DNA from: Macrostomum lignano
Lineage: Eukaryota
Length of the DNA: 64,000 nt
Assembly: GCA_002269645.1 (NCBI GenBank)
Contig: NIVC01000493.1
Span: 372,001-436,000 of the forward strand
Reading direction: 5' to 3'
Part shown: piece after piece, positions 9,456 through 54,922 of the stretch
Numbering within the stretch: position 1 is the stretch's first letter
Layout: the number at the start of each line of letters is the position of its first letter
Made by a program: the position numbers and the translations under genes
The notes under the pieces: generated by a model
What the model was told of the DNA's origin: nothing
Databases searched by the model: none
The model's input: only the letters and a program-made list of their open reading frames with translations

Positions 9456-12314
9456 TCACTCCGAATAGTCGTATTCGGTTGAGCCGCCGTCAGAATCATC
9501 GGCGCCAGGTCTGGCGCCACCGCCGCCGCGCCGCTGCCTGGCGTCAATATCCGACTCGTCGTCGTAGTCGGAGTCGGCGTCGTCCTGGTCGCTGGAGTCG
9601 TACACCGGCTTCTTCACCGGCACCTCGGCGGCCGGCAGTACATCCAGCCGGATTGGCAGGTTCAGCTCGAGGTCAAGGTAGGAGTCGGAGCGCAGACACA
9701 GGGTGTAGGTGTAGCTGCCCGGCTTGTCCGGCGCTTGGAAGCGAAGCGGAACCTGCCGCGCAAATTGGGATTGCAGAGATTTAGACAGAGTATTGCAACT
9801 TGGGATTGTGGTATAATAGATTGAGTTCCCAGCATTGCAGTATGACAGATTGAGATTGCAGGATTGCAGGATTGGGATTGCAGGATTACAGTATTGGGAT
9901 TGCAGGATTGCAGCATTGGGATTGCAGGATTACAGTATTGGGATTGCAGGATTGCAGTATTGGATTGCAGGATTGCAGTATTGGGATTGCAGGATTGCAG
10001 TATTGGGATTGCAGGATTGCAGTATTGGGATTGCAGGATTGCAGTATTGGGATTGCAGGATTGCAGTATTGGATTGCAGGATTGCAGTATTGGGATTGCA
10101 GGATTACAGTATTGGGATTGCAGGATTGCAGTATTGGATTGCAGGATTTCAGTATTGGGATTGCAGGATTGCAGTATTGGGATTGCAGGATTGCAGTATT
10201 GGGATTGCAGGATTGCAGTATTGGGATTGCAGGATTGCAGTATTGGATTGCAGGATTGCAGTATTGGATTGCAGGATTTCAGTATTGGGATTGCAGGATT
10301 GCAGTATTGGGATTGCAGGATTGCAGTATTGGGATTGCAGGATTGCAGTATTGGGATTGCAGGATTGCAGTATTGGGATTGCAGGATTGCAGTATTGGGA
10401 TTGCAGGAGTGCAGTATTGGGATTGCAGGATTGCAGTATTGGGATTGCAGGAGTGCAGTATTGGATTGCAGGATTGCAGTCTTGCAGAATTGGGATTGCA
10501 GGATTGCAGTCTTGCAGAATTGGGATTGCAGTCTTGCAGTCTTGCAGAATTGGGATTGCAGTATTTCCGTATTGCAATTGAGCACAAAATTCAGATTTTG
10601 CAAAATCACAAGCCGGAGAGCTAATTTTTGCCTGGCATTAGGCGTCACTAAGCCAGCTTTTAAATTACAAAGGAAAGATGCACGCACTACACAAGATCAA
10701 TAGGGAATTCTGCTTGAAGCGTGACAAAAAGTGGCCATTTTTAGAATTATCAATTAAATTAAATTAAAACATGCAGAAAAAAAGTCTACCATGTCACCGA
10801 CAGACGGCCAGAAAGACGGCATTCACGTGAGATTAGCTAGCACGCAATTGCATTCATAGATTATTGCTTTTGAATTGTTTATGAGTTGTTTTTCCCATCA
10901 ACATGGATATCAGAAAGATAGAAGGCAGTTGTACAAGCATATGAAAAATTCTGATTTAGTATAGAACCATCGGTGGAAGAACCTCGGCGGGAGAAACTCA
11001 AGCAGAAGAAACTCGATGGGAGAAACTCAAGCAGAAGAAACTCGATGGGAGAAAATCGATGGCAGAAACTCGATGGGAGAAACTCAAGCAGAAGAAACTC
11101 GATGGGAGAAACTCAAGCAGAAGAAACTCGATGGGAGAAACTCAAGCAGAAGAAACTCGATGGGAGAAAATCGATGGCAGAAACTCGATGGGAGAAACTC
11201 AAGCAGAAGAAACTCGATGGGAGAAAATCGATGGCAGAAACTCGATGGGAGAAACTCAAGCAGAAGAAACTCGATGGGAGAAACTCAAGCAGAAGAAACT
11301 CGATGGGAGAAACTCAAGCAGAAGAAACTCGATGGGAGAAAATCGATGGCAGAAACTCGATGGGAGAAACTCAAGCAGAAGAAACTCGATGGGAGAAACT
11401 CAAGCAGAAGAAACTCGATGGGAGAAACTCAAGCAGAAGAAACTCGATGGGAGAAACTCAAGCAGAAGAAACTCGATGGGAGAAACTCAAGCAGAAGAAA
11501 CTCGATGGGAGAAACTCAATGGGAGAAACTCGATGGGAGAAACTCAATGGGAGAAACTCGATGGGAGAAACTCAATGGGAGAAACTCAATGGGAGAAACT
11601 CGATGGGAGAAACTCAAGCAGAAGAAACTCGATGGGAGAAACTCAATGGGAGAAACTCAATGGGAGAAACTCGATGGGAGAAACTCGATGGGAGAAACTC
11701 AAGCAGAAGAAACTCGATGGGAGAAACTCGGTGGGAGAAACTCGATGGGAGAAACTCGATGGGAGAAACTCGATGGGAGAAACTCGATGGGAGAAACTCA
11801 AGCAGAAGAAACTCGATGGGAGAAACTCGGTGGGAGAAACTCGATGGGAGAAACTCGGTGGGAGAAACTCGGTGGGAGAAACTCGATGGGAGAAACTCGG
11901 GAGAATCGAGCTCACCTGCTCTGTGTCATCGAGCGAGGTGATGAACACGGGCTGGGTGAGCAGCTTGGACACGCGCTTGTCGCAGATGTACAGCCACCAG
12001 AACTCGAGCTTCTCGCCCGGGAACATCGGGCAGTGCACGACTCGAGTTGTCCGACTCCGCGTATCCAGCGAGTTGTCCCTGCGCAGCTGCTCCTGCACCC
12101 GGTCCCAGCCGCTCTCGCCGTCGGACTCGTCGCCGTCCCGACTGGCGCCTGCACCGTCCGCCTCGTCGGCATCTTCGTCGGGCGCCTCGGCGGCCGGCTG
12201 CTGCTGGGCGTCGCCGTCGACGGACATTTCGACCAGCGGCGGCAAATCGTCGTCTTCGTCGTTCTCGGTGTTCCGTCCGGCTTCATCGTTTGCCGAAGCA
12301 GCGGCGGATTGCTT

Positions 12315-12349
<35 letters not shown>

Positions 12350-15300
12350 TGGCCTGCTGCTTCGGTTTACTCTTTCCCTTACCCTTGTTCAGCCAACTGT
12401 CCTTGCCGCGCTTCTTCTTCTGCTGCTGCTGATGATGATGCGACTGTTGAGGCTGCTGCGACGAATTCTTTGCCGGGGAGCCGTCGGTGCCGACCGTCGA
12501 GCCGCCGTTTGACGTCGGCGATGCCGCCGTCAGCAAATCATCTTGGCAGCCATTTTGAAGCAGAGTGTGCTGCCGCTGCGACTCATCGTCTCCTGCTTCG
12601 TCGAATTGGTTGGCGGAGGCATCGTCACCGACTGCGGAGGTGGCCGACATCAGCTCGGCCAGGTCGCGCCGCGTCAGGGTCACCGTCACCGTGACCAGGC
12701 TGCTGGCGGTCACCTGCATAGTTACCGGGGCGGTGTGGGTGGCGCATAAAACTTCGAACCGTATAAAAACTGCTATAAGGTTTTCTAAATTCGGGACTGC
12801 CGCTATCCTTTGGATATCTATCCCAGATCTTAAGTTATTAACACCGCAGATGGAGCCAAATATATAAAATCTCCCCAAATATCCCAGATCCCAAATTTAA
12901 TATTGACTACTTTTACTACTACTATTACTAGACTCGGAGGGTTTTTAGTCTACTTGTTAGGGCGCTCGACTCAAAACTGAAAGGTCGGGGCGGGGGTTCG
13001 ATTCCCAATCCCACTGGAACAATTTGTGTCCTTGAGCAAGATACTTAACTCTGCATTGCTTCAGTTCACCCAGCTGTAAAATGGGTGCCAGCATTAGCTG
13101 GGGTAATTGAGGGCGTGTGGCGACCCCCAGTCCTTGGACTGAACAGCCGTACGCTGCCTTCAGCTGCGCCGCGCAGTAGCTGCGGCTGAGCTGTCGGTTT
13201 CTGGGCAGGTGTAATACTGTAAGTACTAACTACTGCTACTACTGCTATTACTACTACTACTATTACTACTACAAATCTCAGATCTCCCCAGAATATCCCT
13301 GATCCCATTCGCCCAGCCGCTCACCTGCTCCGGTTTGTCATCGTCGATGACCTCAATTTTGCTCTGCACGTCGACCTGCGGCATGCCGGCGCACACGGTC
13401 ATAACATCGCGGTACTGGTCCTCGGTCAGGCTCCTAAGCAGCGCCCGCCGCTCGCTATCCGGCATCAGGGCCAATTGTCGAATAGTTCGAATATTTCGCT
13501 TCCTAGTAACAAAATGACGCAACGAATCTTCGGATATGTGCGGCAGCTGCAATATTGGACTCTTGTTCTCCCATAGGCCCTGGACAATCATGGGGCTCAG
13601 CTTCATGATGCACTCGATAGTCTCTAAGCGGGGGTGGCCACAGCGGCTACCGTAGTACTGGGCGCAGGCCACAAGCTGCATGCTAAGTGACACCATCTCC
13701 TGCAGCAGGGCCGGGCACTTGCATACAACTGTCCGCCTATCGACCTCCAGCGTATTGGGGTTCAGGTCCAGCCGGCTGAGATGCGCGTGCAGCAACACGC
13801 GAGCCTTCAAAGCGTATGGCAGACAGAACGGTGGCTCCTTGTTCTTTTCGTTTACCTGAGGCAGCTGCTTCATCACCATTGGAACCTGGACAGGGAATAG
13901 GCGAGGCAAAACTAATCATTATTCTTTCAGGTTATTAAAGCTGAGTCAAGATTGAGGCTGAAAAAGGTAATAGGGGATGAGACGAGAGGGAGACAAAGTT
14001 AAGGGGAGTAGGTTAAGGGAAGACAGTGAGGAGACAAGGTTAAGAGGAGAAGGGTGAGAGGGAGACAAGGTTAAGAGGAGAAGGGTGAGAGGGAGACAAG
14101 GTTAAGGGGAGAAGGGCGAGAGGGAGACAAGGTTAAGGGGGAGGGTGAGAGGGAGACAATGTTAAGGGGGAGATGAGATGGAGACAGGGTTACGGTGAGA
14201 AGGGTGAGAGGGAGACAAAGTTGAGGGGAGAAGGGTGAGAGGGAGACAAAGTTAAGGGGAGAAGGGTGAGAGGGAGACAAAGTTAAGGGAGAAGGGCGAG
14301 AGGGAGACAAGGTTAAGGGGAGGGTGAGAGGGAGACAATGTTAAGGGGAGATGAGATGGAGACAAGGTTAAGGGAGAGGGTGGGAGGGAGACAAGGTTAA
14401 GGGAGAGGGTGAGAGGGAGACAAGGTTAAGGGAGAGGGTGAGAGGGAGACAAAGTTAAGGGGAGAAGGGTGAGAGGGAGACAAAGTTAAGGGGAGAAGGG
14501 TGAGAGGGAGACAAGGTTAAGGGAGAGGGTGAGAGGGAGACAGGTTAAGGGAGAGGGTGAGAGGGAGACAATGTTAAGAGGAGAAGGGTGAGAGGGAGAC
14601 AAGGTTAAGGGGGAGGGTGAGAGGGAGACAATGTTAAGGGGGAGATGAGATGGAGACAGGGTTACGGTGAGAAGGGTGAGAGGGAGACAAAGTTGAGGGG
14701 AGAAGGGTGAGAGGGAGACAAAGTTAAGGGGAGAAGGGTGAGGGGGAGACAAAGTTAAGGGAGAGGGTGAGAGGGAGACAAGGTTAAGGGAGAGGGTGAG
14801 AGGGAGACAAGGTTAAGGGAGAGGGTGAGAGGGAGACAAGGTTAAGGGAGATGGTGAGAGGGAGACAAGGTTAAGGGAGAGGGTGAGAGGGAGACAAAGT
14901 TAAGGGGAGAAGGGTGAGAGGGAGACAAGGTTAAGGGAGAGGGTGAGAGGGAGACAAAGTTAAGGGGAGAAGGGTGAGAGGGAGACAAGGTTAAGGGGAG
15001 AAGGGTGAGAGGGAGACAAGGTTAAGGGAGAGGGTGAGAGGGAGACAAAGTTAAGGGGAGAAGGGTGAGAGGGAGACAAGGTTAAGGGAGAGGGTGAGAG
15101 GGAGACAAGGTTAAGGGAGAGGGTGAGAGGGAGACAGGTTAAGGGAGAGGGTGAGAGGGAGACAAGGTTAAGGGAGAGGGTGAGAGGGAGACAAGGTTAA
15201 GGGAGAGGGTGAGAGGGAGACAAGGTTAAGGGAGAGGGTGAGAGGGAGACAGGTTAAGGGAGAGGGTGAGAGGGAGACGGGTTAAGGGAGAGGGGATGAG

Positions 15301-18300
15301 GAATGATGGTGAGCGACAAGGTTAGTTATGGGGAGAACAGGAGATTATAGACTTCAGACAATGTCATGCTCTAAATCAGACATCAAACCGCTCTGACTGA
15401 CCTCTTCGTTGTCTGACGGTCGTTCAACCACTTCGGGATTCTGCAGCCGATTGAACTCGCAGGCGCTGGCCAGAATCATTAAGATGCGCCTAAACGACAT
15501 ATTAGGCGTGCGCATAAGGAAATAGCGAAATATTTCCGTAGTCTGCAGCAATATCGACTCGCCAGTGAACTTGATGGTTCTGTACCACCAGGTTCCAACC
15601 ACCACAGGCAGCAGCACCATGAATACGAGGCCGTAGACGCCAAGCACTAGCATGCTGTTCTCTTGGCGGACCAGCCATTTAGGCAGAGCGATGCCGAAAT
15701 TAATAGCCGTAGGGCCGTCAGGACTGCCGTGGATTTCCCAATTCTTTCTGTCCTGTTCGTTAGTGAGAGCCCGGTAGGCCTTGGAGATCTGCTGGAATAC
15801 CTGCGGATCGCCGCCTTTGTCTGGGTGATGCGTCAGTGACAGCTGGCGATAGGCTCTGCGAATGTCCATCGGACTGGCGCCCTGAACAGATTGACGGGGG
15901 TAGAAACAATATAATTTATACGCGCGCTTCTAATTTTACTACTAGTAGTAGAAATGCAAGAAAAAATCTAGCGATATTTTTAAGTCATTAAACATTTCAT
16001 AAAAAATTGTAGTATGCTTTTAGCACTACTTATAAAAGTAGCGAATCACGCGAATAATGTATAAATACGAAGGTAGGAAATCAAACATACTGTAATAAAT
16101 CAACAATTTACAATTACCTACCCGATCAATGCCCAGAACATTGTAGGGATCGAAGTCCATCCATTCGACCTTAATTGTGTTCACCTTGTACAACAGCACT
16201 GCCAGTATTATCCATAAGACAAAGAACAAAAGCTTCCTGTAATTGAAAAGTACATAAGTAACTCATGTCAGCTTAAATTACATTATTTCCGAGGCCAAGA
16301 ATAGAAACTTACAATAACTTTTTCTTTCGCTCTTTCCATGGCGAAAAAGATTTCAACAGATGCCGCTTCATCTGGCAGCCGTCGCAGTGACATTTCCGCT
16401 TGCCTTGCTCGATGCGATCTACGAATTTCAGGCCAGTGAAAATTGTAATCTGTCACACGGGTTAAGGCTAATGGGGGATCGCTTATATGTCAAGGCTTAT
16501 GGGGGGGGAATTGCTTAGATGTCAAGGCTTATGGGGGAATTGCTTAGATGTCAAGGCTTATGGGGGAATTGCTTAGATGTCAAGGCTTATGGGGGAATTG
16601 CTTAGATGTCAAGGCTTATGGGGGAATTGCTTAGATGTCAAGGCTTATGGGGGAATTGCTTAGATGTCAAGGCTTATGGGGGAATTGCTTAGATGTCAAG
16701 GCTTATGGGGGAATTGCTTAGATGTCAAGGCTTATGGGGGAATTGCTTAGATGTCAAGGCTTATGGGGGAATTGCTTAGATGTCAAGGCTTATGGGGGAA
16801 TTGCTTAGATGTCAAGGCTTATGGGGGAATTGCTTAGATGTCAAGGCTTATGGGGGAATTGCTTAGATGTCAAGGCTTATGGGGGAATTGCTTAGATGTC
16901 AAGGCTTATGGGGGCGCTGATAGAAGTGTCATAGACATGAAAAGTGTCAGGTCAAAAATAAGAGTCATGTAAAACATAAATAAGCATCTGTAAGACATAT
17001 AGAAGTGACATGTCGAACATAGAAAATTTATTTGGGAAATGCTACGACGTCAAAGCTTGAAGGAAATTGCTATAATGTGACTTTTGGGGAGAATTACTGA
17101 AATTTCAAGGTTTATAGGGGAAGAACTTCTAAGAAGTCAAGGCTTTAGGGTTAGGGTTGGGGTTAGGGTTACAATTAGGATTAGGGGGAATTGCTAAATA
17201 GGAGAGTTAGGGGGAATGGGGGATATTTCAAAGCTGACAAAGGATTTGTTGACATTTCAAGGCTGACAGGGGAGTTGTTGAGATTTCAAGGCTTATTGGT
17301 GGCATTTCTGAGATGTTAAGGCACATTGGGGGATTGTTGAAATGTCAAGGCTTATAGGCAGTGCTGGGCACTGGTCCGTTAATAAGTGTTAATCCATTAA
17401 TAAGCATTAATATTTCTCATTAATGTTAACGGACTGCCATTAAGATTTTTTGAACTAACAGATTAACGAATTTGTGTTAATTATTTTGTGAGTTAACAAA
17501 AAATTCATTGTTAACATCAAAGACAGTGTCAAGACAAACGATGCAAAGAAAAAACAAAAATACAAGTCTGGCAAGAAGTTACAACATTACAAATGTATTT
17601 GAATTTACCTAAATGTCTAATTAATCTCTTTGATTATGACAATGATCATGCAGATGTAACAACTTCTTACTAATGAACTTTAATAATGAATTAAAATTGT
17701 GAACTTTATTGCTTGTGTGTGAGCATTGATTGCTTTGATTCACTTCTTTGCCAATCTTTTGTAACTTTCTGCTGTGCCTGCTAATGCTACTGAAAAAACC
17801 TTCCTATTCGTATTTTATTATTAACTAATTAGCTTTTTAAGTTTCAAATAAATAAGTTAATTTGTTTACTGTATGCTTACTTTTAGTAGTATTATACTTA
17901 CAAGTTTTTACTATTATAATTTTTTGTTATTTTTTTAGCTTGTAAATTGGTTGGATGACCTGTGTTTAGCTAAAAAGATGGAAAAGCAAAAGCAGTGCAA
18001 GATTTCTGTATTTTCTGTGTTAACTTTAACGGATTAACCCTAATTAATGATTATCAGTTAATTTTCAGTTAACTTAATGATATTAAGAGTTAAAAAGTTA
18101 AGATTTTTTGTTTGAACACTAATGCTTTTGCCTTTAATGGAAGTTAAGATTTTCATTAATGGTGCCCAACACTGCTTATAGGGAAAATTGCTGAGATTAC
18201 TGCAAGAAGCTAAATATAATTTATTCTAAGAACTATTCCATTTTCTATTGGCTTAATAATAGGAGGAGCTAATTGCTGGTCTTAACTACATGCAAGAGCT

Positions 18301-43826: not shown

Positions 43827-46800
43827 CTACGAGGTCACGCTGGCATAACTCGGGACCTGCCCGTAGATGCCTCCCATCACGGCAACGCTGGCCAGCAGGA
43901 ACAGCCAGAACATGGCCCGATCAGTTGACCTCGCCATCGCCACCCAGGCATCGGGCCCGTTGCAGATGCATTCTTTGGTGCCATCGCTCGGATGAGCTTG
44001 CGACTCTTGCCTCGGCGAGTGTGGCTTCTTCTTGTTGGACACCACCTCGTCCGCTGCTCCGGCCTCGTAGTCCAGTAGCGACAGGTGGCTTGGCAGGCGA
44101 ATGAGGTGCGTGGTCTTCGACTGCTCAGTTGACGACACAGCTCCGTTACCGTTGGATGGCTGCTGCGGCCTCTGCCTGAGCTGCTGGCAACTCTCGTCGC
44201 CGTTGCTGCCGACAGACTCGCATCCGTCGACTGTTGTCGAGTGCGGAAAACGGAATCGAGCGGCGGTGGTGGCGCCGCTCAACGCCGCAAATCGGCTGTG
44301 TCGATGTCGATGACGCTCGGCTTCGAGGCGGCGCCGGCGGCGACACTCGCGGCAGTGAAGCAGGCTGACGAAGAGGCGCACCGGCCAGGGCGGCGGGCCG
44401 CTGCTCGTCACTTTGCGCACGTGGATGTTGGTGACAAGGACGCCCATCACAAGTGCTAGCGACACCATGACCATTGTGATGCCGAACAGAAGGCCTGGCC
44501 GGGTTTTGTGAGGATTAGCTGTTGCTTGAGCTGCTGTAATGCTATGGCATAGTTTAAAGCGAGGAGTCAAGCCCCATAACTCTTCCCTCAGAGATGAGCT
44601 GCACGCCCTGACTTCCCAGTCAAGCTTTCAGTGTACACACTCTGTGCCTTGGCATTGAACTCAGCATGTGAAAGTTCGCATGTATCATGAAACTAGATCG
44701 TTCATCCGGCGATTGCGGGGAAGCCATGCTGCAACTTATTGACAGAATCAAAGTTTTGGACAGCTTCAGATTCATCTTCAGATTCAGATTCATGTAAGCA
44801 GTCTTCATACATATACTGGTAGCGGCATGAAAGCGTTAGGAATTGGCAGGCATTCGGTGGGGAAGGCTCGGTGGGGAAGGCTCGGTGGGGAAGGCTCGGT
44901 GGGGAAGGCTCGGTGGGGAAGGCTCGGTGGGGAAGGCTCGGTGGGAAGGCTCGGTGGGGAAGGCTCGGTGGGGAAGGCTCGGTGGGGAAGGCTCGGTGGG
45001 GAAGGCTCGGTGGGGAAGGCTCGGTGGGGAAGGCTCGGTGGGGAAGGCTCGGTGGGGAAGGCTCAGTGGGGAAGGCTCGGGGGGGAAGCTCGGTGGGGAA
45101 GGCTCAGTGGGGAAGGCTCGGTGGGGAAGGCTCGGTGGGGAAGGCTCGGTGGGGAAGGCTCGGTGGGGAAGGCTCGGTGGGGAAGGCTCGATAGGAAAAG
45201 GTCCAGAGTGAGAATCTCATAAACCGGCATCATGAGAGCTAATACTTCGCCCACTCAATGTATTCAAGTCTGTGTCTGAACAAAACTACGAGCTGGTATT
45301 TTTGGAAGACTATTGCAGGATTCAAAAACCACTATTCTCTGTCACTCACTCCATTATTTTAAAAGAAGCGAAAATTCTACAGAGTTACTGAACCATGTCA
45401 GGCCTCCTTGGTGCGATCTCAGTCAAAGCTGAAAGCAGACAAAGTCAAAGAACCCGTGAATACTGAATGAAGAGACCTACAACGTCTGTAGAAGACAGTG
45501 GACACTTTCAATCTAAAATCTCAGATCAGCGAGGCTGCGCTGAATCCGAATTAATGAGGCCGAGTCCGTAGTCAGTGGAAAAGTAACTATCACTCATATC
45601 GCAAAGCTTTCGCAAAGTTATTAGTCAATTAGTGGGAGTGCCCGGTCCCCTGTTCCCTGGCTCGAGTTGTTGTATCTGGGTGAATCTGCAGAGAAAAAAA
45701 TGATTTTTCGGGTGTGTCGGTTTGCATGGGAAACTGCGGCAGATTGATCTACCTAATAGTGAAAGCGCTGAGCTCATCGATTCTCTGCAAACTGTTGGTC
45801 ATTTTTTGCAAGCTTTGTTATTTGCTACAGTTTTCCCAATGGATAACCGTGTTAGCTGAAGCTAATGGCACAGCTGGGAGTCGGTCAACTCTGCTAGATG
45901 GAGACCTGCGCTGCGAGGTCCACGCTTCTCTCATGATGCCAATTTATTGAAAAAAACGTTAGACCCAGTACTGACAGTCTCGCTCAGATATTCTGGCCTG
46001 CAGTGGTGTCCTTCGAAAGTAATTGCCCTCTCTGGGGGGGGGTGGGGTGGCGGCTCGGGAGGATGGCGGTGGCCCTCCACATGTAGGTGTCAGTCAGGAA
46101 AGTCTAAGAGAGAATATCAAATTATCTGTCAGATTAATAATTGCTCGACTTAATCCACAAGCTCTGGATAGCGAATGAAGCTGCCTTTATTATCGTAAAA
46201 TGCTGTGTAATATGTATTTCTATGCTTACATATGCGCCTTGCATATCCCCCATTAACACTCACCCCATTAGCATCAAACCCCATTGACACTCCACCCCAT
46301 AGACATACCCAATTGACACCCACCCCATCGACACCCACCCTATTGACACCCAATCTATTAACAGCCACCCCATCGACACCCACCCCATCGACACCCACCC
46401 CATCGACACCCACCCCATCGACACCCAACCCATTGACACCCACCCCATCGACACCCACCCCATTGACACTCACCCCATCGACACCCACCCCATTGACGCC
46501 CACTTAATTTGCAACCCACCACATTTAAAATGCAGACGTAAGTTATGAGTAAAACCCGGTATTCAGAAAAAATGCTTAAATTTAATCAGTTGAATCCGGT
46601 TTCTAAATGGATTGGCAATCACGAGGCATTTTGTCTCTTAGACGACAAAAAACTTACGTGCCTAATTGGGTCTATACTTACCAACACTTATGTAGGACAA
46701 ATCAGAACGTAAACTTTCTCCAATTGGTTCTACCTTAAAAAGATTTTATGCCTCATAAAAATTGGTCTCTGTGAGTTTGCGTTGAATTCAAAGGCTCTGG

Positions 46801-49800
46801 CGCCTCCGCTATAGCTCTAGCTCAAAGGCCAGGCCAGATTGTTGCTATGGGCCGCGTGTGTGAGCTTAGGACACTCAACTTCGGACACTTAAGTACTTCA
46901 CTCAGCTATTCTTTTGAATTTTTTATATCCACCCACCCACTCCGCCATACAAGATCGGGGAGTTGAGTGAATAAATCTGCTCAGGTCGAGAAAATCACCA
47001 GCTGCTAGAAGCTTAAAAGTATGCGTTTGAAAGGGCGGAGAAGGATTTTTCTGCATGAAATCGGAATTGGGCACTTCAGTTCACTTTGTTCAATAGAGGA
47101 CGGCGGTGCGCCAGTGTAGAACTTCTACAGTATGCGATGCATGCGCACAAACCGCTTAGTGAGCTTGTGCGGAGAGGCTGGGGCACCTCTTTATCCTCCC
47201 TCCAGGTGAGTGTACATGCAGTCACTCGGAGAGGCTGGGGCACCTCTCTTCATCCTACCTCAGGTGAGTGTCTATGCAGTCACTCGGAGAGGCTAGGGAA
47301 CCTCTTCATCCTCCCTCAGGTGAGTGTCTATGCAGTCACTCGGAGAGGCTGGGGAACCTCTTCATCCTCCCTCAGGTGAGTGTCTATGCAGTCACTCGGA
47401 GAGGCTGGGGAACCTCTTCATCCTACCTCAGGTGAGTGTCTACGAGTACTGTATGCAGTCACTCGGAGAGGCTGGGGCACCTCTTCATCCTCCCTCAGGT
47501 GAGCACCCGGTCACTCGGTGGGGAATCTCCATCCTCACTCAGGTGAGTGCCCAGTCTGTTGTCACTCACCCACAAGCGGAATGGCGTCAGGCGTTGGCGG
47601 CAGTGTGTCCCCAACGATGAGGAGGAACACCACCAGAGCCAGCAGGATGGTCAGCTCCAAGTTGACTTTTTCTCCCGTTTCAATCGGCAGGAAGAAGCCA
47701 AGAAAGCTGGCCACGTACATCAGCAGGCAGGGAAACATCAGGTTAAATACGTAGAACAACGAGCGTCGAGTCATGTCAATCACTATGGTAACGTCGGGCC
47801 ACGGCTCCTTGCAGCAGGCGTAGACACCCTCCGTTCTAGAAAATTTTATGGCCGAGACGTTCCACTCCTGCGGGGGAGATAAAGAGGAGTACAATTTTCT
47901 GAACTATAAATATTTCATAAAGGCTGAACCACACCCGGGGTCATGAAACTTGAACTATCTACGGGTCATGAACCCATGAGGCTCATGATCATTGAGACTA
48001 ATCTACTTCCGGTTCATTGAGACTAACCTACTTCCGGTTCATTGAGACTGACCTACTTCCGGCACATTGAGACTAACCTACTTCCGGTTCATTGAGACTG
48101 ACCTACTTCCGGCACATTGAGACTAACCTACTTCCGGTTCATTGAGACTGACCTACTTCCGGTTCATTGAGACTGACCTACTTCCGGTTCATTGAGACTG
48201 ACCTATGACACAAATAACGATGCAAATCGTGTCGCATACTATGCAAAAGGCATACAAGGGCACACCTGGTTATTCTCCCTATAGTAATTTTTATTTGCGT
48301 CAACTGATTCGTCGTGCCACACATCCACCTCAAACAGGTGATAAGTCCAGCTGATGAAGGTTATCATGCAAGTCTGCCGGTCGAATGGGAAATAGCGGAC
48401 ATTCAGGGTGCACGTGACCTTGACCACGGCCGGAAACATCCAGAGCACGCTGCCATTGTACCAGGCCACTGTATTTGTCGTCATAAACTTTTTGCTGCTC
48501 TCGTCGGCGCTAAAGTAAAGAGAAGTAAAATCATATGGAAAACGGATAATTAAATATCTGATAAATCTAGAACGTCTGGTCAGGGAAAAACACATTTAAA
48601 GTTGGATTTGGCTTCAGTAAGTTCAACAACCAATCAGCTTCGAGGTGGGGTTCGGCTGTTATCTGGCTACAGCAGTCAGACTGGGGGCTTCGGCAGCCAA
48701 TCAGCTTCGAGGTGGGGTTCGGCTGTTATCTGGCTACAGCAGCCAGACTGGGCTTCGGCAGCCAATCAGCTTCGAGGTGGGGTTCGGCTGTTATCTGGCT
48801 ACATAAATAAAATTATCAGTGGGAAAGAATAGTAAAAATTACCTAATTTTGTAGACTGCATCACGTGGGAACTCTTATTGATAATTTAAGCGTTTGGGTA
48901 GCTCTGTGTGCAGATGGCAGCACACGGATAGGAACCTGTGTGCTTTTAATTTAAAATTGAATACTGATGCGATTATTATTATTGCCCAGAAATTGTTATT
49001 TCATTGCGAGTGGACACAAAGATGAAGATGAACTTATTTCCCGTTCAGTCATTGTACTCTCTTCATCTGCTCTGCAGCTTCTTTTCATGCTCTATTTTTA
49101 GAGCCTTGCAGAGCAGCAGACTTTTCTCTTGTCATATCTGGCAAGCCGACTTTATAATGGAAATTTCAGTTCATTGTGTTGGTCGGGAGAAAAATTGTCT
49201 GTCCACACCATAGCTTTCGGATGATGCATTGGAGTTTTAAAGGCTGTAAATACGCTCGTAGGCGCTTAGCTGAGGTCTATCGGCAGCGTCACCTGCATGC
49301 GACTCATGCCCGCCTCAGTTGCTGGGAAAACTGCACCTGGGCCGAGCACTTGAGAACTTGAGAGTTTCAGTGGATTAAAATTTGCCTATATGTTTGGCGT
49401 AAATCGAGTTGAATGACTGATTTCAGGTTTTATTGGATTTTCTCTTTGACTGACTGGATTTTGCTAGAATTGCAGGAGTTCATAAGTACATGGGAAGTGA
49501 GTTTATAGTGTAAGATTATTTTACTTTTTAATTTAATATTATGAAACTTTTTAATATGCTCAGTGAGTTTGTAGGCGAGAGGGAAACAACTGGGGCAGCG
49601 GCGCTTAATCAAAAGACTGCAGGGATAGGGGCGCTTAATCAATGACTATGGGTAGTGGCGCGTAATCAAGGGACTGGGGGCCGCGGCGCTTAATCAAGGG
49701 ACTGAGGGAAGTGGCGCTTGATCAAGGGACTGAGGGAAGTGGCGCTTGATCAAGGGACTGGGGGCAGCGGCGCTTGATCAAGGGACTGGGGGCAGCGGCG

Positions 49801-52800
49801 CTTGATCAAGGGACTGGGGGTAGTGGCGCTTAATTAAGGGAAAAAACCACTGAGGAAAGTGGCGCTTAATCAAGGGACTGAGGGAAGTGGCGCTTGATCA
49901 AGGGACTGGGGGTAGTGGCGCTTAATCAAGGGACTGGGGGTAGCGGCGCTTAATCAAGGGACTGGGGGCAGTGGCGCTTAATTAAGGGACTGAGGAAAGT
50001 GGCGCTTAATCAAAGGGCTGGGGGCAGTGGCGCTTATTCAACGGGCTGGGGGCCGTGGCGCTTAATCAAAGGAATGAGTTTTCTGTCTGCTGACTAACCC
50101 AGAAACACAAAAAACTGTGCTTACTGATAAAATTCAAACTTAAAAAATGTTCTCCTCGCAATCCTCCCAGAGACATGGCAAGCCGATTCAAATAGCTCGT
50201 AGCAGCAGCAATACAAAGTGCAGTAATAGTTTTTTTATTCCCTTTTCATCAAGTGGCGGAGTTCACGCTTCAACAATATTCAAATCGCTTTGCGGATGCT
50301 GAGAAAGCTACGCTATCTACCAAGATGAGAGAAACAAAAGTTGAGGACGGTTGAGTTAGAAAAAAATTGTTTCATTGAAAAGAAACGCGTCTTACTCAAT
50401 GTGCACCCGACTCAAAGCGTCGCGCTTTCCGTCTTTATTGTAAAAGACTCACCCTGTTTAGGAAACTGGGCCTGAGTCTCTATTGAGCTGCTTTCATCCG
50501 AGTCTTTTATGTACTTTTTTAAAACCTGCTCTGTCTACCCGCGGTTTTGTATCCTGTCATTGTTCTGCGACTCCCAGCTATTGGGTCTCAGCATTCACTT
50601 GAAACGCATTATTGAAATCATTCTTTTCATTGAATTTTCGGGTATCGCATTTTGTAGCAAAGCATAGGAATTTTCCCGACTTGTTTCCAGTCCAGGGATG
50701 TCACAAGGAAATTCCATGGATATCTAAATATAGAAACAGGGGGCCGTAGCCCAGCGGTCTAGCGCAGGCTCTGGTGTGCCAGCGACCCAGGCTCGATTCC
50801 AAGTGCAGTCACATTTTGGGGCTGAATTGGAATCTCGGCTTGGCTCTGCTCGTGCAATTAACGGCCTTGAGAGCCAACCCCCCCCCCCCCAAGGCGCAGT
50901 GAAGTGTACATGCCTAACGATAATATAAAGTTAGGGCCGCTGTACACTCCTGTGTGAGTGTGTGCCTGCGTACGTATCCGCGCGCTTGTATGCCTGCTCA
51001 GGGGAGTCGGTGGAATGGGCAGCAATGCCTCTCGCCGGTTGTGTGTTGATGTCGCTTAAAGTGCACCAGGGTGTACACAACACAACCCCCCTGCTTCTAA
51101 TAAAAAATATAGCATCGGGACACAAGACGAGCTGATTTCTTTCACATATTGTTCCATTGTATGTGAATCTGCCAGTGATTCCCATCTTAGTTTATTGGAC
51201 CGTGTCGAGCAGAAGGCTGCCACGATCATTGGTGTCTCTTTCAAGGTTCCATATAACTTTGGGCCTCGCATAACTGTTGGTGAACTGGCTTTTGTCCATA
51301 GACTTCTGCGAGGTCAAGGATCCAGTGAACTTCAGCAGCTCCTGCTATTTTTAGAACTCCATGCATAAGTACGGGCCATTAGTTGGTGTTAAGAGTCTGC
51401 TTTGTGTGCTTCAAAAAGAATATTGTTCAGTTTTTTCTGAGGTTTTGTGCAAGTTAAGTCAAGATGTGTCTTGTTGGAGGACAGGCATCGTCCTGACCGG
51501 CATGCTGTACAAAATATGATGAAGGGCTGCAGGGCGTAATTATAAGAATAACTCGGCCCTAATGAGGTTTGCAACGATCCAATGGCCAAGTTATAAGAGT
51601 GCGCAGTTCATATCATATAAAGACATGGATGACGTATCGATTGTGGATGACATCAAAGTCACATTCGGACGGCTGGTCTGAAATTTTTGAGAAGCTCGAC
51701 ATTCGAATATTGATTTGCTGAGACTGCAGGGCTGCCTCGCCACAACTGATCTTATCAACTCGTGCGATGCGCATCAGTTGCCGGGGCACCGAGGACTGTA
51801 CGGAGTTTAATAAGTGCCTTGAGGCCAAATATGACAGACACTGGCTCAGTATGTAAATATAGCTTTTCAAATCGTATCTGTAGCCAACAGAATGACCACT
51901 TAGAACCACTAGGTCCTTGTCAAGGTGACAGTGGATAAGTACGGCAGGAACACAGGATGTACACAGCGGCCCTGACTCTCCAATCGTCAGGCATGTTCAC
52001 TCTCTGTGCCTCGTGGGTTGGCCCTCACATGGGTGAATCGCCCAACAACCTCCTGACCAATTTTCGTGCAATTTCTTCAACTTTAAAATTGGCATCAATT
52101 TGGGACCGTGAAAGCAATAAAACATGAAACAATTTAGCTCTAGACTAATAGCCTAGCTGAAGTCACTAATGACTATCGGAGCCGGTAAGTCAATTACGTG
52201 GGGGTGAATTGTACTTATCAGAGCGCACGCCAATTAAATTGACATCAAAGAAATGTTTGCGGCAACTTTTTTGCTCTGCAATATCGGCAAAATTCAATTC
52301 GATGAAAATGCTTGGCTCACCTATTAGAGATAACGATGTCCGGAGTCCAGATCGCACTGGATGGGATATGCAAATTTGTGGTGCCGTTGAAGTCCTCCGG
52401 ATCCCAGGTCAGGTATTCGTCTGTCCAGCGCTTGAAGGTTTTTTAGAAGGGAGCTTTGTGTCAAAAAGGAAACGGAAAGCGACATATAAAAGCGGATGGG
52501 GCTGCGGTGCAGCAAGATTAGATGCACCGCAAGTGGGGAGAAGTTTCCCAGTGTCTCAGTGTCCCAGTGTCTCAGTGTCCCAGTGTCCCAGTTTCCCAGC
52601 TATCTGAGCGTGACCGTGACAATGTCAGTTTATCTCTCGCTAGCCCAGTCCGCCCAGTTATAACAGCTATCTGATATAGATCCGCTGTTGCTAACTGAAA
52701 GCAATGTCAGCATTTTCTGTCATCTGCGTATTTTTGAAGCTGCCAGTCAGTTAATGACGAGCCGGAACTGCGCCTGTAAGCGAAGGCAATCAGTCTGTAT

Positions 52801-54922
52801 GGGAAGCCATGACTGTGAAGCGCCAGGATAGCTGGATGCGACTGGAGCGACAATGAGCAATGAGTAGTAGGCCATTTTTCTCTCTTCTACACGCTGCATC
52901 ATAGTCTACTCAACGAAATTAAACGTTAGACTTGAATAGTTTGCTTCAGAGTATGCTCAGACAGATTATAGAAGAATTCATAGCCTAAAAAAGGCCAGGG
53001 AAACCGTGAAGCACTCACCAGCCGGATTGACATCAAAGCAGAAAAGGTTTGGTGCTTCTCGTCCTGCAATGAAGTTAACGAAAACAGTCACTTTCAGATG
53101 CTCGTGGATTCTTAAGCATTCAAGTCCAGGTGGCGTACCTGTGCTGCTTACAGGGGGGTTGGAGTTCTCTCCGCTCAGACCCGCACAGGTGCAGAGCTGA
53201 GAAAATTAATCCAAGTCCTCATTTCGAGACAGGTCCCAAGAGATTAAGGAAAATGTCCCTATGTGAAGGAGCTACATGCAATTTCTAGACCATTTTTAGG
53301 GCCTGTCCATTGGCATGGCTAAGCTCGCAGGCAAGTACTTGACGCCCTTGTCAGTTAGTATTCAGCCAGAATAAGACCAGGCCATGTTAATCGTGGAATT
53401 TTTTGTTGGAAATCCGACAGATTAAGCTAAGCTTACGCATAATATTTTGCTCCACTTCTTTCCCCTGTCTCAAACCCCGAGTACAACTTGAGGGAGAAGA
53501 ATAGGAAGACTACTGGACACCCCACAGCGCAGCGAGTTCAATCGAGGGAAAAATAACAACTCGCACAGAGTCTGCACAGGTATTAACTCAAAGGTTAGCT
53601 CTTGACGCTAGAGCAAACAAGACAGGACTCAGTTCTTGTCTCAACAAAATGGATCAACTAACTCGTAAAAGTGTACGCAAACAACCAAGAGACGCCTCAG
53701 ATGGTCAGGCAACATTTGGTACAGTTGCGAGATGCATACTGGCTGTCAAATATGGATCTATTTCAGGTGACGTCACAGGAAAGGCATACAGCGTGGGATT
53801 TCTTATATGTGACAAGCTGGTAAATACTCTTGGAATCTGGGTAGCCTTGAAATTCAGAGTTGTCAACAACATTCCTTACAAAGTACACAGTCGGTGTCCA
53901 TGCACTACCTGAACTGGTCCATGGGCCGAAGACCTGATGATCCATTTAAATGTAACCACTACCAGCAAAAACAGAAAAGCATTCAAAACCTCTTTTTATT
54001 CAGAAGCACATGAAAGCCAATCAAAGCTCTACTGCAATCAGACAGATTATGTAACACTCAAAGATATTTGGCAGCCGTAAACACCTTTGAAACACCAGAA
54101 AACATTGCACTTGAATCAACGCAGGATTTCAGCTTAAAATGGTCCTCTCAGAATCTAGATGGCTCGGGTTTTTGGTGTCATTTCAACTGTGATTTATTCA
54201 GTGCCCAGCCTACCGTGTCCAGTATGTGGAACAGCGCCACAGCTATGTGCACGCGAATCTGCGTGCTGTCGTTGATCACCGGCCTGGAGGTTCGGTCGTA
54301 GCCGCACAGCAGGGCCTCCTTGGCCGCCTGCTCACTGGAGCAGCGCCTGCGTTGGCAGTGATCGGCGCACTCAGCGGTCAGCCGAGTGACACCTGTGTCC
54401 GGGACGGGTTTGAGCAATTTTCTCCTCATTAATGTATTGAGCTTTTGCCAACTAATAATAATAATAATTGATTACAGCTGCCCCAATCGGCCAGATGTGC
54501 AACCGACAGCTCAGCCGCAGCCATTGCGCGGCGCATCTGAAGGCTGGGGTCGCCACACACCCTCAATTACCCCAGCTAATGCTGGCACCCATTTTACAGC
54601 TGGGTGAACTGAAGCAATGCAGAGTTAAGTATCTTGCTCAAGGACACAAATTTTTCTGAGGTGGGTCGGGAATCGAACCCCCGACCTTTAAGTCATGAGT
54701 CAGACGTTCTAACCACCAAGCTACAACCTCGCCAAGTCTTCGCCATTATCGAGAAGCTGGATAGTTACCGTCCGGTCCGGACAGTCCGGAGTGTCCGGTG
54801 TCCGAGGCCCGGCCGGACGCGGCGGTGCCAAGATTTTTGGCCCGCGACGCTGCGCCCAGGCCCGGCCAGATGAGCAGCGAAGGCAGCGCCAGCAGCAGCA
54901 GCATTGAAAATTGCCCGCACAT
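43827..54922 (-). CDS. Nicotinic acetylcholine receptor alpha-type (Cys-loop) subunit, 7 exons: 54922-54769, 54392-54214, 53063-53019, 52430-52321, 48509-48266, 47867-47570, 44494-43827 (565 aa)
   Basis: Signal peptide; YDRTSRPV; DEKHQ (45-nt exon); WTDEYLTWDP...WTPDI (110-nt exon); Cys-loop CTLNVRYFPFDRQTC; loop C YACCKEPWPD; RRSLFYVFNL; GEK-M2; M3; M4 DRAMFWLF. All introns GT-AG with consistent phases; total 1698 nt. Confidence 0.95.
44857..45190. repeat. 15-bp G-rich repeat GGGAAGGCTCGGTGG (nAChR intron 6)
   Basis: Direct reading; about 22 units. Confidence 0.95.
46250..46500. repeat. 15-bp C-rich repeat ACACCCACCCCATCG
   Basis: Direct reading. Confidence 0.9.
47165..47550. repeat. 56-bp tandem repeat (GCAGTCACTCGGAGAGGCTGGGG...CCTCAGGTGAGTGTCTAT), about 7 copies
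   Basis: Units at 47276, 47332 and onward; adjacent to the nAChR exon 6 donor. Confidence 0.9.
47990..48205. repeat. 25-bp tandem repeat ATTGAGACTAACCTACTTCCGGTTC, about 8 copies
   Basis: Direct reading; inside nAChR intron 5. Confidence 0.92.
48628..48803. repeat. About 65-bp tandem repeat x3 (CCAATCAGCTTCGAGGTGGGGTTCGGCTGTTATCTGGCTAC...)
   Basis: Units near 48628, 48696 and 48760. Confidence 0.88.
49595..50070. repeat. 28-bp minisatellite GGCGCTTAATCAAGGGACTGGGGGCAGT
   Basis: About 16 variant units. Confidence 0.92.
50739..50855 (+). mobile_element. tRNA-derived SINE, family 2, copy 2
   Basis: GGGGCCGTAGCCCAGCGG ... GGCTCGATTCCAAGTGCAGTCACATT; matches the 6846 copy. Confidence 0.65.
51165..51600 (+). 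mobile_element. Degenerate LINE RT C-terminal fragment
   Basis: Plus frame CESASDSHLSLLDRVEQKAATIIG...VGELAFVHRLLRGQGSSELQQLL matches the LxxLDxVQxxAxxII...YRxxxGxxxxEL pattern of CR1/L2-type ORF2. Confidence 0.6.
54453..54730 (-). mobile_element. tRNA-derived SINE, family 1, copy 3 (nAChR intron 1)
   Basis: TAGCTTGGTGG A box; GGTTCGATTCCC B box; shared central domain; (TTA)n tail. Confidence 0.85.

Follow-up and report, generated by a model that had tools for sequence, protein, structure and literature searches.

The locus described here raises the question of which ligand, if any, is recognized by a nicotinic-type receptor subunit whose agonist pocket departs from the canonical one. The gene lies on the minus strand of a stretch of 64,000 nucleotides (hereafter the window, in whose positions all coordinates are given unless another sequence is named) from the flatworm Macrostomum lignano (GenBank assembly GCA_002269645.1, contig NIVC01000493.1, positions 372,001 to 436,000 of the forward strand). 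The initial annotation had recognized an alpha-type subunit of a nicotinic acetylcholine receptor (nAChR) with a remodeled agonist pocket, and had proposed that the receptor could sense a zwitterion or an amino acid and may not be a conventional receptor for acetylcholine (ACh). The alpha-type subunit and its non-canonical pocket were borne out, and the difference in the pocket proved to be conserved across phyla; the proposed class of ligand did not hold up. We believe with moderate confidence that the gene encodes a selectively maintained, agonist-binding alpha-type subunit of a cation-selective pentamer, and that it belongs to a spiralian subfamily, the [S/A]-x-R subfamily, whose pocket was altered in its ancestor.

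In the encoded protein, two members of the aromatic box, the set of five aromatic residues of the canonical agonist pocket, were replaced. We assigned residues by a hand count along a HMMER alignment to human alpha7, with which an independent profile alignment agreed, and found the following states, each given after its alpha7 counterpart.

alpha7 W55, loop D: Ser81, codon TCA, 53030-53028, minus strand
alpha7 Q57, loop D: Arg83, codon CGG, 53024-53022, minus strand
alpha7 Y93, loop A: Ser119, codon TCT, 52328-52326, minus strand
alpha7 W149, loop B: Trp175, retained
alpha7 Y188, loop C: Tyr218, retained
alpha7 C190/C191, loop C: Cys220/Cys221, retained
alpha7 Y195, loop C: Trp225, codon TGG, 47801-47799, minus strand

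None of the named pocket codons spans a splice junction. All of these states (the vicinal cysteines, Y188 and W149 kept; Y93S, Y195W, W55S and Q57R changed) had been read in the same way in the initial annotation, with which both alignments agree, and all the peptides quoted there are encoded on the minus strand. Three of the five box positions are therefore aromatic (Trp175, Tyr218 and Trp225), and positions 93 and 55 are occupied by Ser119 and Ser81.

The combination of states in this pocket is rare among neighboring receptors. In the 112 nearest alpha-type domains from outside the subfamily, the aromatic box was complete in 96; a non-aromatic residue was found at position 55 in 4, at position 93 in 11 and at both in 2, and Trp was found at position 195 in 2. 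By these frequencies, the pattern in the window exceeds what would be expected by chance. The parts of the pattern have different histories, so that the description of the pocket as remodeled stands for some and falls for others. The loss of W55 and Y93 is family-wide. Y195W is private to the window genome (of 57 relatives, 55 have Tyr at position 195 and 2 have Phe), as is a Ser at position 95, and the Arg at position 57 was inherited, as described below.

The loss of the loop D Trp and the loop A Tyr was shared with a distinct set of proteins from several phyla. We gathered homologs by homolog searches and by an exhaustive profile search of 1.84 billion representatives and recovered a set that is 42-57% identical to the window protein, with members from nemerteans (Lineus, Tubulanus), a brachiopod (Lingula), the flatworm Macrostomum, an orthonectid (Intoshia) and annelids (Owenia, Capitella, Helobdella, Dimorphilus, Lamellibrachia and Ridgeia). 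The subfamily further includes many exon fragments found in ENA and Logan assemblies, and several species carry two paralogs. The closest full-length relatives by score are nemertean, and among receptor fragments the nearest share no more than 66% identity with the window protein, except for one of 178 residues (P0077) that is 74% identical over 20% of the query. Database annotators label members of the clade "alpha-9/alpha-10-like". Loop D reads [S/A]-x-R in all 15 members with loop D sequence, and A-V-R in orthologs from two further genomes (L002-L004). At position 93 the members have Ser, Thr, Asn or Gln (Asn in L002-L004), except for one Owenia paralog with Phe, and W149, Y188 and both loop C cysteines are invariant, with Arg83 at least 90% conserved. 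That the difference is conserved across phyla indicates that it is functional and not a product of decay, and the remodeling of the pocket is old and shared across the subfamily.

Profile scores and tree topology both set the subfamily apart. Against a profile of the clade, the window protein scored 662 bits and full-length members 610-750 bits; partial or more divergent members (from Helobdella, Dimorphilus, Capitella and Intoshia) scored 434-595 bits, and the best non-member scored approximately 403 bits. In a neighbor-joining tree of 95 sequences, 13 full-length members, including the window protein, were monophyletic in 100 of 100 bootstraps, separate from alpha7, alpha9/10-like and DopC-like sequences, and were joined to the rest by a long stem. 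The group falls in the part of the family tree that holds alpha7, alpha9/alpha10 and DopC, a group of dopamine-gated channels considered at the end. We identified 27 signature positions, at which a residue is invariant in the clade but seldom seen elsewhere; the window protein matches 24 of them. They cluster in strand beta2 and loop D (H65, T69, T75 and L79, with [S/A]81 and R83), loop E (L143), loop B (Ile173, where Gly is usual), loop F (Y196 and Q202), loop C (A219) and the M2 region (Asn2', which is N271; Glu4', which is E273; V281, G288 and P295). The window protein also keeps 119 of 130 (92%) positions that are conserved in the clade and deviates at 11, for the most part conservatively, indicating that the gene is under constraint. 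We found no member from a mollusc, although our searches were not fully exhaustive inside clusters of 50% identity; since molluscan proteins were retrieved in the neighboring DopC-like group, molluscs were not simply missed. Divergent nicotinic-like subunits with substituted binding residues were already known in spiralians (PMC6896357, PMC10338036, PMC13174522). What is new here is the added member, the definition of the clade, its conserved pocket and pore signature, and the correction of the argument from Arg57.

The domains, fold and pore of the window protein are those of a nicotinic receptor. The protein has the Pfam domains Neur_chan_LBD (5.8e-53) and Neur_chan_memb (1.4e-27). In HMMER searches its top solved relative was human alpha7 (E-value 1.2e-72, approximately 33-36% identity), followed by alpha4, alpha6, alpha3, beta subunits, muscle subunits and then 5-HT3A (approximately 1e-50), and nAChRs far outscored every anionic receptor. 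An AlphaFold2 monomer model made on an alignment of 70 sequences had a mean predicted local distance difference test score of 80 (60 with an alignment of 14 sequences) and was confident outside the intracellular loop, with the strands of the ectodomain and helices at residues 239-261, 268-290, 300-330 and 483-514. Foldseek matched this model best to alpha7, then to alpha4beta2, the muscle nAChR and 5-HT3A, and the top 50 matches were all nAChR or 5-HT3 chains. The signature disulfide loop C154-x13-C168 is present (CTLNVRYFPFDRQTC), with both cysteines invariant in the alignment, and the vicinal cysteines Cys220-Cys221 lie in YACCKEPWPD. M2 (IETGEKVNLELTILLALVVFLLIVGD) has GEK, Glu-1', Asn2', Glu4', Leu9' and Asp20' and no PAR or PAK, a motif from which the pore is predicted to be of the cation-selective type. 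Taken together with the gene structure, these features identify the locus, as judged from sequence, as an intact gene for an alpha-type subunit of a nicotinic-family Cys-loop channel.

The gene has seven exons and six introns and extends from 54922 to 43827 on the minus strand; the interval given in the initial annotation, 47570-53063, covers exons 3-6 only. The exons are as follows, with exons 1 and 2 as in the minimal model (model A), which gives a product of 523 residues.

Exon 1 (model A), 54849..54922, minus strand: start codon and signal peptide (MCGQFSMLLLLALPSLLIWPGLGA), with an in-frame stop upstream
Exon 2 (model A), 54214..54346, minus strand: N-terminal helix and strand beta1, ending in ALFHILDT
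Exon 3, 45 nucleotides, 53019..53063, minus strand: DEKHQTFSALMSIRL, loop D with Leu79 (alpha7 N53), Ser81 (W55) and Arg83 (Q57)
Exon 4, 110 nucleotides, 52321..52430, minus strand: RWTDEYLTWDPEDFNGTTNLHIPSSAIWTPDIVISN, loop A with Ser119 (alpha7 Y93)
Exon 5, 48266..48509, minus strand: begins SADESS and holds loop E (Val135, Leu143 and Met145), the Cys-loop C154-x13-C168, loop B (FISWTY, with Ile173 and Trp175) and loop F
Exon 6, 47570..47867, minus strand: loop C YACCKEPWPD (Tyr218, Cys220, Cys221 and Trp225), M1 and M2 (IETGEKVNLELTILLALVVFLLIVGD)
Exon 7, 43827..44494, minus strand: M3, disordered intracellular loop, MA helix, M4 and stop codon

Only the junction between exons 1 and 2 is uncertain. 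The donor of exon 1 in model A (gtcgcg, junction 54849|54346) is weak, and an alternative model B (54769|54392) has a better donor (gtaact) and gives a protein of 565 residues, in which 42 more residues separate the signal peptide from the first helix; this longer linker resembles that of several relatives. Exon 2 was matched by tblastn at 100% identity and aligns with YD(K/R)(T/S)SRPV...HILDT of the relatives. The choice between the two models has no effect on the binding site.

The unusual residues are not readily explained by decay of the gene or by misassembly, in which case they would be sequence errors or marks of early pseudogenization. The weak donor of exon 1 in the minimal model, Y195W and a few other residues private to the window genome are what such an account could draw on. 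However, the reading frame has no frameshift and no internal stop codon, introns 2-6 have GT-AG boundaries, the conserved positions of the clade are retained to the extent given above with mostly conservative deviations, the S/A-x-R motif is common to every relative with loop D sequence, and the TGG codon of Trp225 lies two base changes from a Tyr codon. We give this explanation practically no weight.

The pocket pattern also did not result from the choice of one exon over another. A different exon 3 or 4 had been named in the initial annotation as a case that would overturn it, and the genomic scan found no alternative copies: there was no mutually exclusive exon 3 or 4 that restores Trp55 or Tyr93, either in a scan for AG-45 nucleotide-GT exons over 57000-43000 or in tblastn of 32 relatives against the whole window. 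Exon 3 is the sole 45-nucleotide AG...GT open exon of its type in the gene region, and the window contains neither a tandem paralog nor any other receptor gene or spare exon of the receptor type. The orthologs L002-L004 have the same 45- and 110-nucleotide exons.

The structure of the gene differs from that of these orthologs. Exons 5 and 6 form a single exon in the orthologs (L002, positions 9974-10516; L003; and L004, positions 9974-10516), whereas in the window gene they are separated by an additional intron, which falls between Gln202 and Glu203 (48266/47867), and this split is an intron gain or loss inside the subfamily. Introns 4, 5 and 6 hold minisatellites (44854-45190, 46248-46503, 47170-47503, 47989-48205, 48630-48803 and 49592-50073) with units of 14, 15, 56, 25, 65 and 28 nucleotides in up to 24 copies. 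A B-box (GCTCGATTCC / GGTTCGATTCC) is present in each of two tRNA-like stretches, one at 50739-50803 on the plus strand in intron 4 and the other at 54728-54663 on the minus strand in intron 1. Neither was called as a tRNA by ARAGORN or Rfam, and they are probably the heads of tRNA-derived short interspersed nuclear elements. The genome is rich in minisatellites, and elsewhere in the window bigger arrays read as long repetitive open reading frames (at approximately 9.6-12, 24-27.7, 32.6-34.2, 34.6-35.5 and 55.8-59.2 kb), and there are three neighboring genes.

11643-15869, minus strand: Sec63-type gene (DnaJ domain and Sec63 Brl domain), for a fragment of which the only matches were ENA fragments of approximately 50% identity
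29306-30595, minus strand: innexin, a mark of non-chordate animals, the C-terminal two thirds of which is one open reading frame of 429 residues
39468-41407, plus strand: protein with an FkbM-type methyltransferase domain

The Arg at position 57 was not indicative of a carboxylate-binding site. The initial annotation had equated alpha7 Q57 with Arg65 of the glycine receptor (GlyR), which is correct (PMC3066128, Table 2), and had taken the Arg in loop D to mark a site for a carboxylate or zwitterion, which does not follow. Arg was the commonest residue at this position in the 112 nearest alpha-type domains from outside the clade (51 of 112, plus 11 with Lys). It is found in the ectodomain of human alpha9, which is ACh-gated (PDB 4D01, YLWIRQIW), and in skate alpha9 (P0096, W-I-R), and 5-HT3A has W90 and R92 at the equivalents of positions 55 and 57 and Asn128 at that of the loop A Tyr (PMC3537142; equivalences from PMC3066128, Table 2). 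Because Arg57 is the commonest state in the nearest relatives and is present in alpha9 and 5-HT3A, it was inherited and is not part of the remodeling. Furthermore, the betaine-gated channel ACR-23, the sole structurally solved zwitterion-gated channel of the nAChR family found in this analysis, keeps Tyr116, Trp178, Tyr222, Tyr229 and Trp78, holds the carboxylate of betaine with the thiol of Cys224 and through a water to the backbone carbonyl of Ala79, with no Arg involved, and has its current abolished by Y116A (PMC11377560). Based on these results, we conclude that, among cationic Cys-loop receptors, an Arg at the equivalent of alpha7 position 57 cannot be taken as a marker of a carboxylate-binding site. 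Since Arg coexists with cationic agonists in cationic receptors and ACR-23 binds betaine without using one, the suggestion that betaine or glutamate is the ligand has no specific support.

For these reasons we consider it improbable that the protein is a receptor for a zwitterion or an amino acid (betaine, glutamate or a glycine-like compound) in which Arg83 would anchor the carboxylate as Arg65 does in GlyR. The homology of the two positions is real, the strong conservation of Arg83 in the clade would suit such a function, and the loss of Trp55 frees space by the guanidinium. However, the Arg predates the clade, and the relatives that share it, including human alpha9 and 5-HT3A, bind cationic ligands. 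In addition, ACR-23 binds betaine with a whole aromatic box and without using an Arg, the pore is of the cationic GEK type and not PAR or PAK, and a second basic residue, typical of amino-acid sites, was not identified.

The aromatic residues that were lost are those that alpha7 can do without. In an alanine scan of alpha7, Y93A and W55A were functional, whereas W149A, Y188A, C190A, C191A and Y195A gave no current (PMC3066128, Table 2). The clade lost exactly the two dispensable aromatics of the box and kept the indispensable ones, consistent with a site where an organic cation still binds against the loop B Trp, beneath a loop C that closes over it. The ligand is probably a small organic cation.

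From the gene structure, family, clade, residue states and conservation, all of which were observed directly, we infer the following course for assembly, ligand class and gating. In the ancestor of the subfamily, the loop D Trp would have been replaced by Ser or Ala and the loop A Tyr by Ser, Thr, Asn or Gln, removing two of the five residues of the box, together with other pocket-lining changes (N53L, Q117L, G147I, E189A and changes in loop F) and the gain of Asn2' and Glu4' in M2. Five subunits would assemble, either as a homomer or with a paralog from the clade. An organic cation would bind under loop C, where its contacts would be the retained Trp of loop B, the Tyr of loop C, the vicinal disulfide and the other aromatic residue of loop C, and closure of loop C would open the cation pore with its Glu-1', Leu9' and Asp20'. 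Compared to alpha7, this pocket has a smaller, more aliphatic floor and back wall with a guanidinium, so an altered selectivity is to be expected.

Several observations weigh against an agonist-binding subunit with a new specificity. Vertebrate alpha5 keeps the vicinal cysteines yet binds no agonist, and the variability of position 93 in the clade (S, T, N, Q or F) could reflect a relaxed constraint on the principal face instead of a new specificity. The sister group of the clade was not settled: among 100 bootstraps it was alpha7-like in 21, an amphioxus alpha9-like group in 20, a soft-coral alpha10-like group in 17, vertebrate alpha9 in 2 and DopC-like in 1. Finally, the literature that we searched contains no description specific to the clade and no functional or expression data for any member.

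Alternatively, the protein could play an accessory or structural part in a heteromeric receptor gated by ACh. Its own pocket faces would then be unused, as happens in vertebrate alpha5 and on the minus face of muscle alpha1, and the substitutions would matter little for the choice of ligand. Loop D is part of the minus face and loop A lies on the plus face (PMC8634148), and in a heteromer neither has to face agonist; the variability at position 93 and the presence of two paralogs in several species are in keeping with this. However, W149, Y188, the vicinal cysteines, an aromatic residue at 195, R57, L53 and L117 are strongly conserved over several phyla, the clade is placed among groups that form homomers (alpha7, alpha9 and DopC), and a copy is also present in the orthonectid Intoshia. 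We regard an accessory role as unlikely, though it is the alternative to agonist binding that we take most seriously.

If the subunit does bind an agonist, as we favor, the identity of that agonist can be proposed only tentatively. ACh or choline, acting at reduced potency, is one possible physiological agonist, and we would not put its chances high. Another amine or small molecule has somewhat better prospects, which still fall short of even. It is conceivable, again on the doubtful side, that the subfamily as a whole provides ionotropic receptors for some transmitter different from ACh (a monoamine, another amine or a small molecule not considered here), in which case the loss of the loop A Tyr and the loop D Trp, together with Ile147, Leu117 and Arg57, would form a new selectivity filter. 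A non-cholinergic ligand, if confirmed, would mean a fast transmitter system specific to these phyla, whereas a low-potency ACh or choline channel or an accessory subunit would be ordinary. Spiralians have many nicotinic-like genes of uncharacterized function, most of which are lineage-specific duplicates. In contrast, the [S/A]-x-R subfamily is low-copy and extends from a flatworm to annelids, nemerteans and a brachiopod, with a copy in an orthonectid, which makes it a well-defined target for deorphanization.

Comparison with known systems placed the protein apart from each of them. Membership in the anionic receptors of the GlyR or GluCl type was rejected: only the position of the Arg matches, the pore has GEK and the vicinal cysteines are present. 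ACR-23 of C. elegans is, like the window protein, a cation channel of the nAChR family, and it is gated by the class of ligand that had been proposed here, but it differs in having the full aromatic box listed above (Y116, W178, Y222, Y229 and W78). 5-HT3A is likewise cationic and shares an Arg at the equivalent of position 57 (R92) and, where the loop A Tyr would be, a residue that is not aromatic (N128), but it keeps the loop D Trp (W90), needs Glu129 in loop A, where the subfamily has an invariant Asn, has no vicinal cysteines, and is much less similar overall.

Nicotinic-like receptors with non-canonical pockets are known from other lophotrochozoans, among them the orphan receptor Alpo4 of Alvinella pompejana and the octopus chemotactile receptors, the latter of which detect ligands other than ACh. 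Alpo4 differs from the window protein in that it keeps F103, W159, Y199, Y205 and W65, is without vicinal cysteines and has a constriction at Met16' (PMC10338036). Chemotactile receptors differ in being intronless and mostly cephalopod-specific, with a very hydrophobic pocket (PMC13174522). We rejected membership in that group, as the window gene has six introns, the protein keeps the loop B Trp, the first loop C Tyr and the vicinal cysteines, and the best cephalopod match is 27% identical. The same comparison bears on whether the protein might be an environmental chemosensory channel that, like the octopus receptors, senses poorly soluble or external molecules. Chemoreceptors derived from nAChRs do exist and have lost ACh-binding pocket residues (PMC13174522), and the minus face in the window protein is more aliphatic (L53, S55, L117 and M119). 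However, chemotactile receptor genes are expanded in addition to the differences already given, whereas the window gene has its introns at ancestral positions and is single-copy in the window, the clade is low-copy and conserved across phyla with no mollusc member found, and the Trp for cation-pi contact and the vicinal disulfide are kept. A chemosensory role of this kind seems very improbable to us.

Human alpha7 is the best match to the window protein among solved structures, in both sequence and fold, and has the same pore features (GEK, Leu9' and an acidic 20' residue), and the alpha7 gene has the same architecture of 45- and 110-nucleotide exons. It differs in carrying Trp55, Gln57, Tyr93, Gly147, Gln117 and Tyr195, and it groups elsewhere in the neighbor-joining tree. 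The alpha9 and alpha10 subunits of vertebrates are also alpha-type with vicinal cysteines, cation-selective, and have Arg57 in loop D, and alpha9 is among the top characterized relatives (382 bits against the clade profile; 38% identity over 320 residues). However, alpha9 has W55, Y93, W149 and the equivalents of Y188 and Y195, has an M2 of the Ser2'/Gly4' type, and is ACh-gated. Orthology to CHRNA9/10 was rejected, as Trp55 and Tyr93 are absent from the window protein and alpha9 was in the sister group in only the 2 bootstraps noted above.

DopC channels, which are found in protostomes and are related to alpha9/alpha10, are homomeric cation channels that open in response to dopamine but not to ACh (bioRxiv 10.1101/2025.04.02.646353). 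We decoded peptides of Octopus DopC1 from the probe set published with that preprint. Octopus DopC1 keeps Trp55 (W-I-N), Tyr93 (LYNNAD) and the loop B Trp, with GEKISMGITTL in M2. The DopC-like snail protein P0104 scored 371 bits against the clade profile, about as alpha9 did, but DopC has members from molluscs, arthropods and nematodes, and none from these groups were found for the clade. Membership in DopC (orthology to Octopus LOC115218923 or Aplysia LOC101853763) was rejected: 34 residues of the window protein matched the decoded DopC1, compared to 153 for P0104, M2 and loops A and D differ, and a sister relationship was recovered in the single bootstrap noted above. The DopC-like group in the neighbor-joining tree comprised P0104, P0161, P0119, P0128, P0131, P0142, P0170 and P0192 (from mollusc, nematomorph, rotifer, tardigrade, amphipod and nematode), of which P0104 and the clam protein P0161 were the best matches to the decoded fragments. 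Apart from His93 in P0104, all box positions in this group are aromatic, and position 57 is occupied by Asn, Thr, Ser or Arg. A loss of canonical aromatics therefore does not account for the selectivity for dopamine in that family. Since related families differ in ligand, with ACh for alpha9/alpha10 and dopamine for DopC, the ligand is a labile trait among these receptors, and a non-ACh ligand for the [S/A]-x-R subfamily, if that proves to be the case, would add a third ligand class beside these two.

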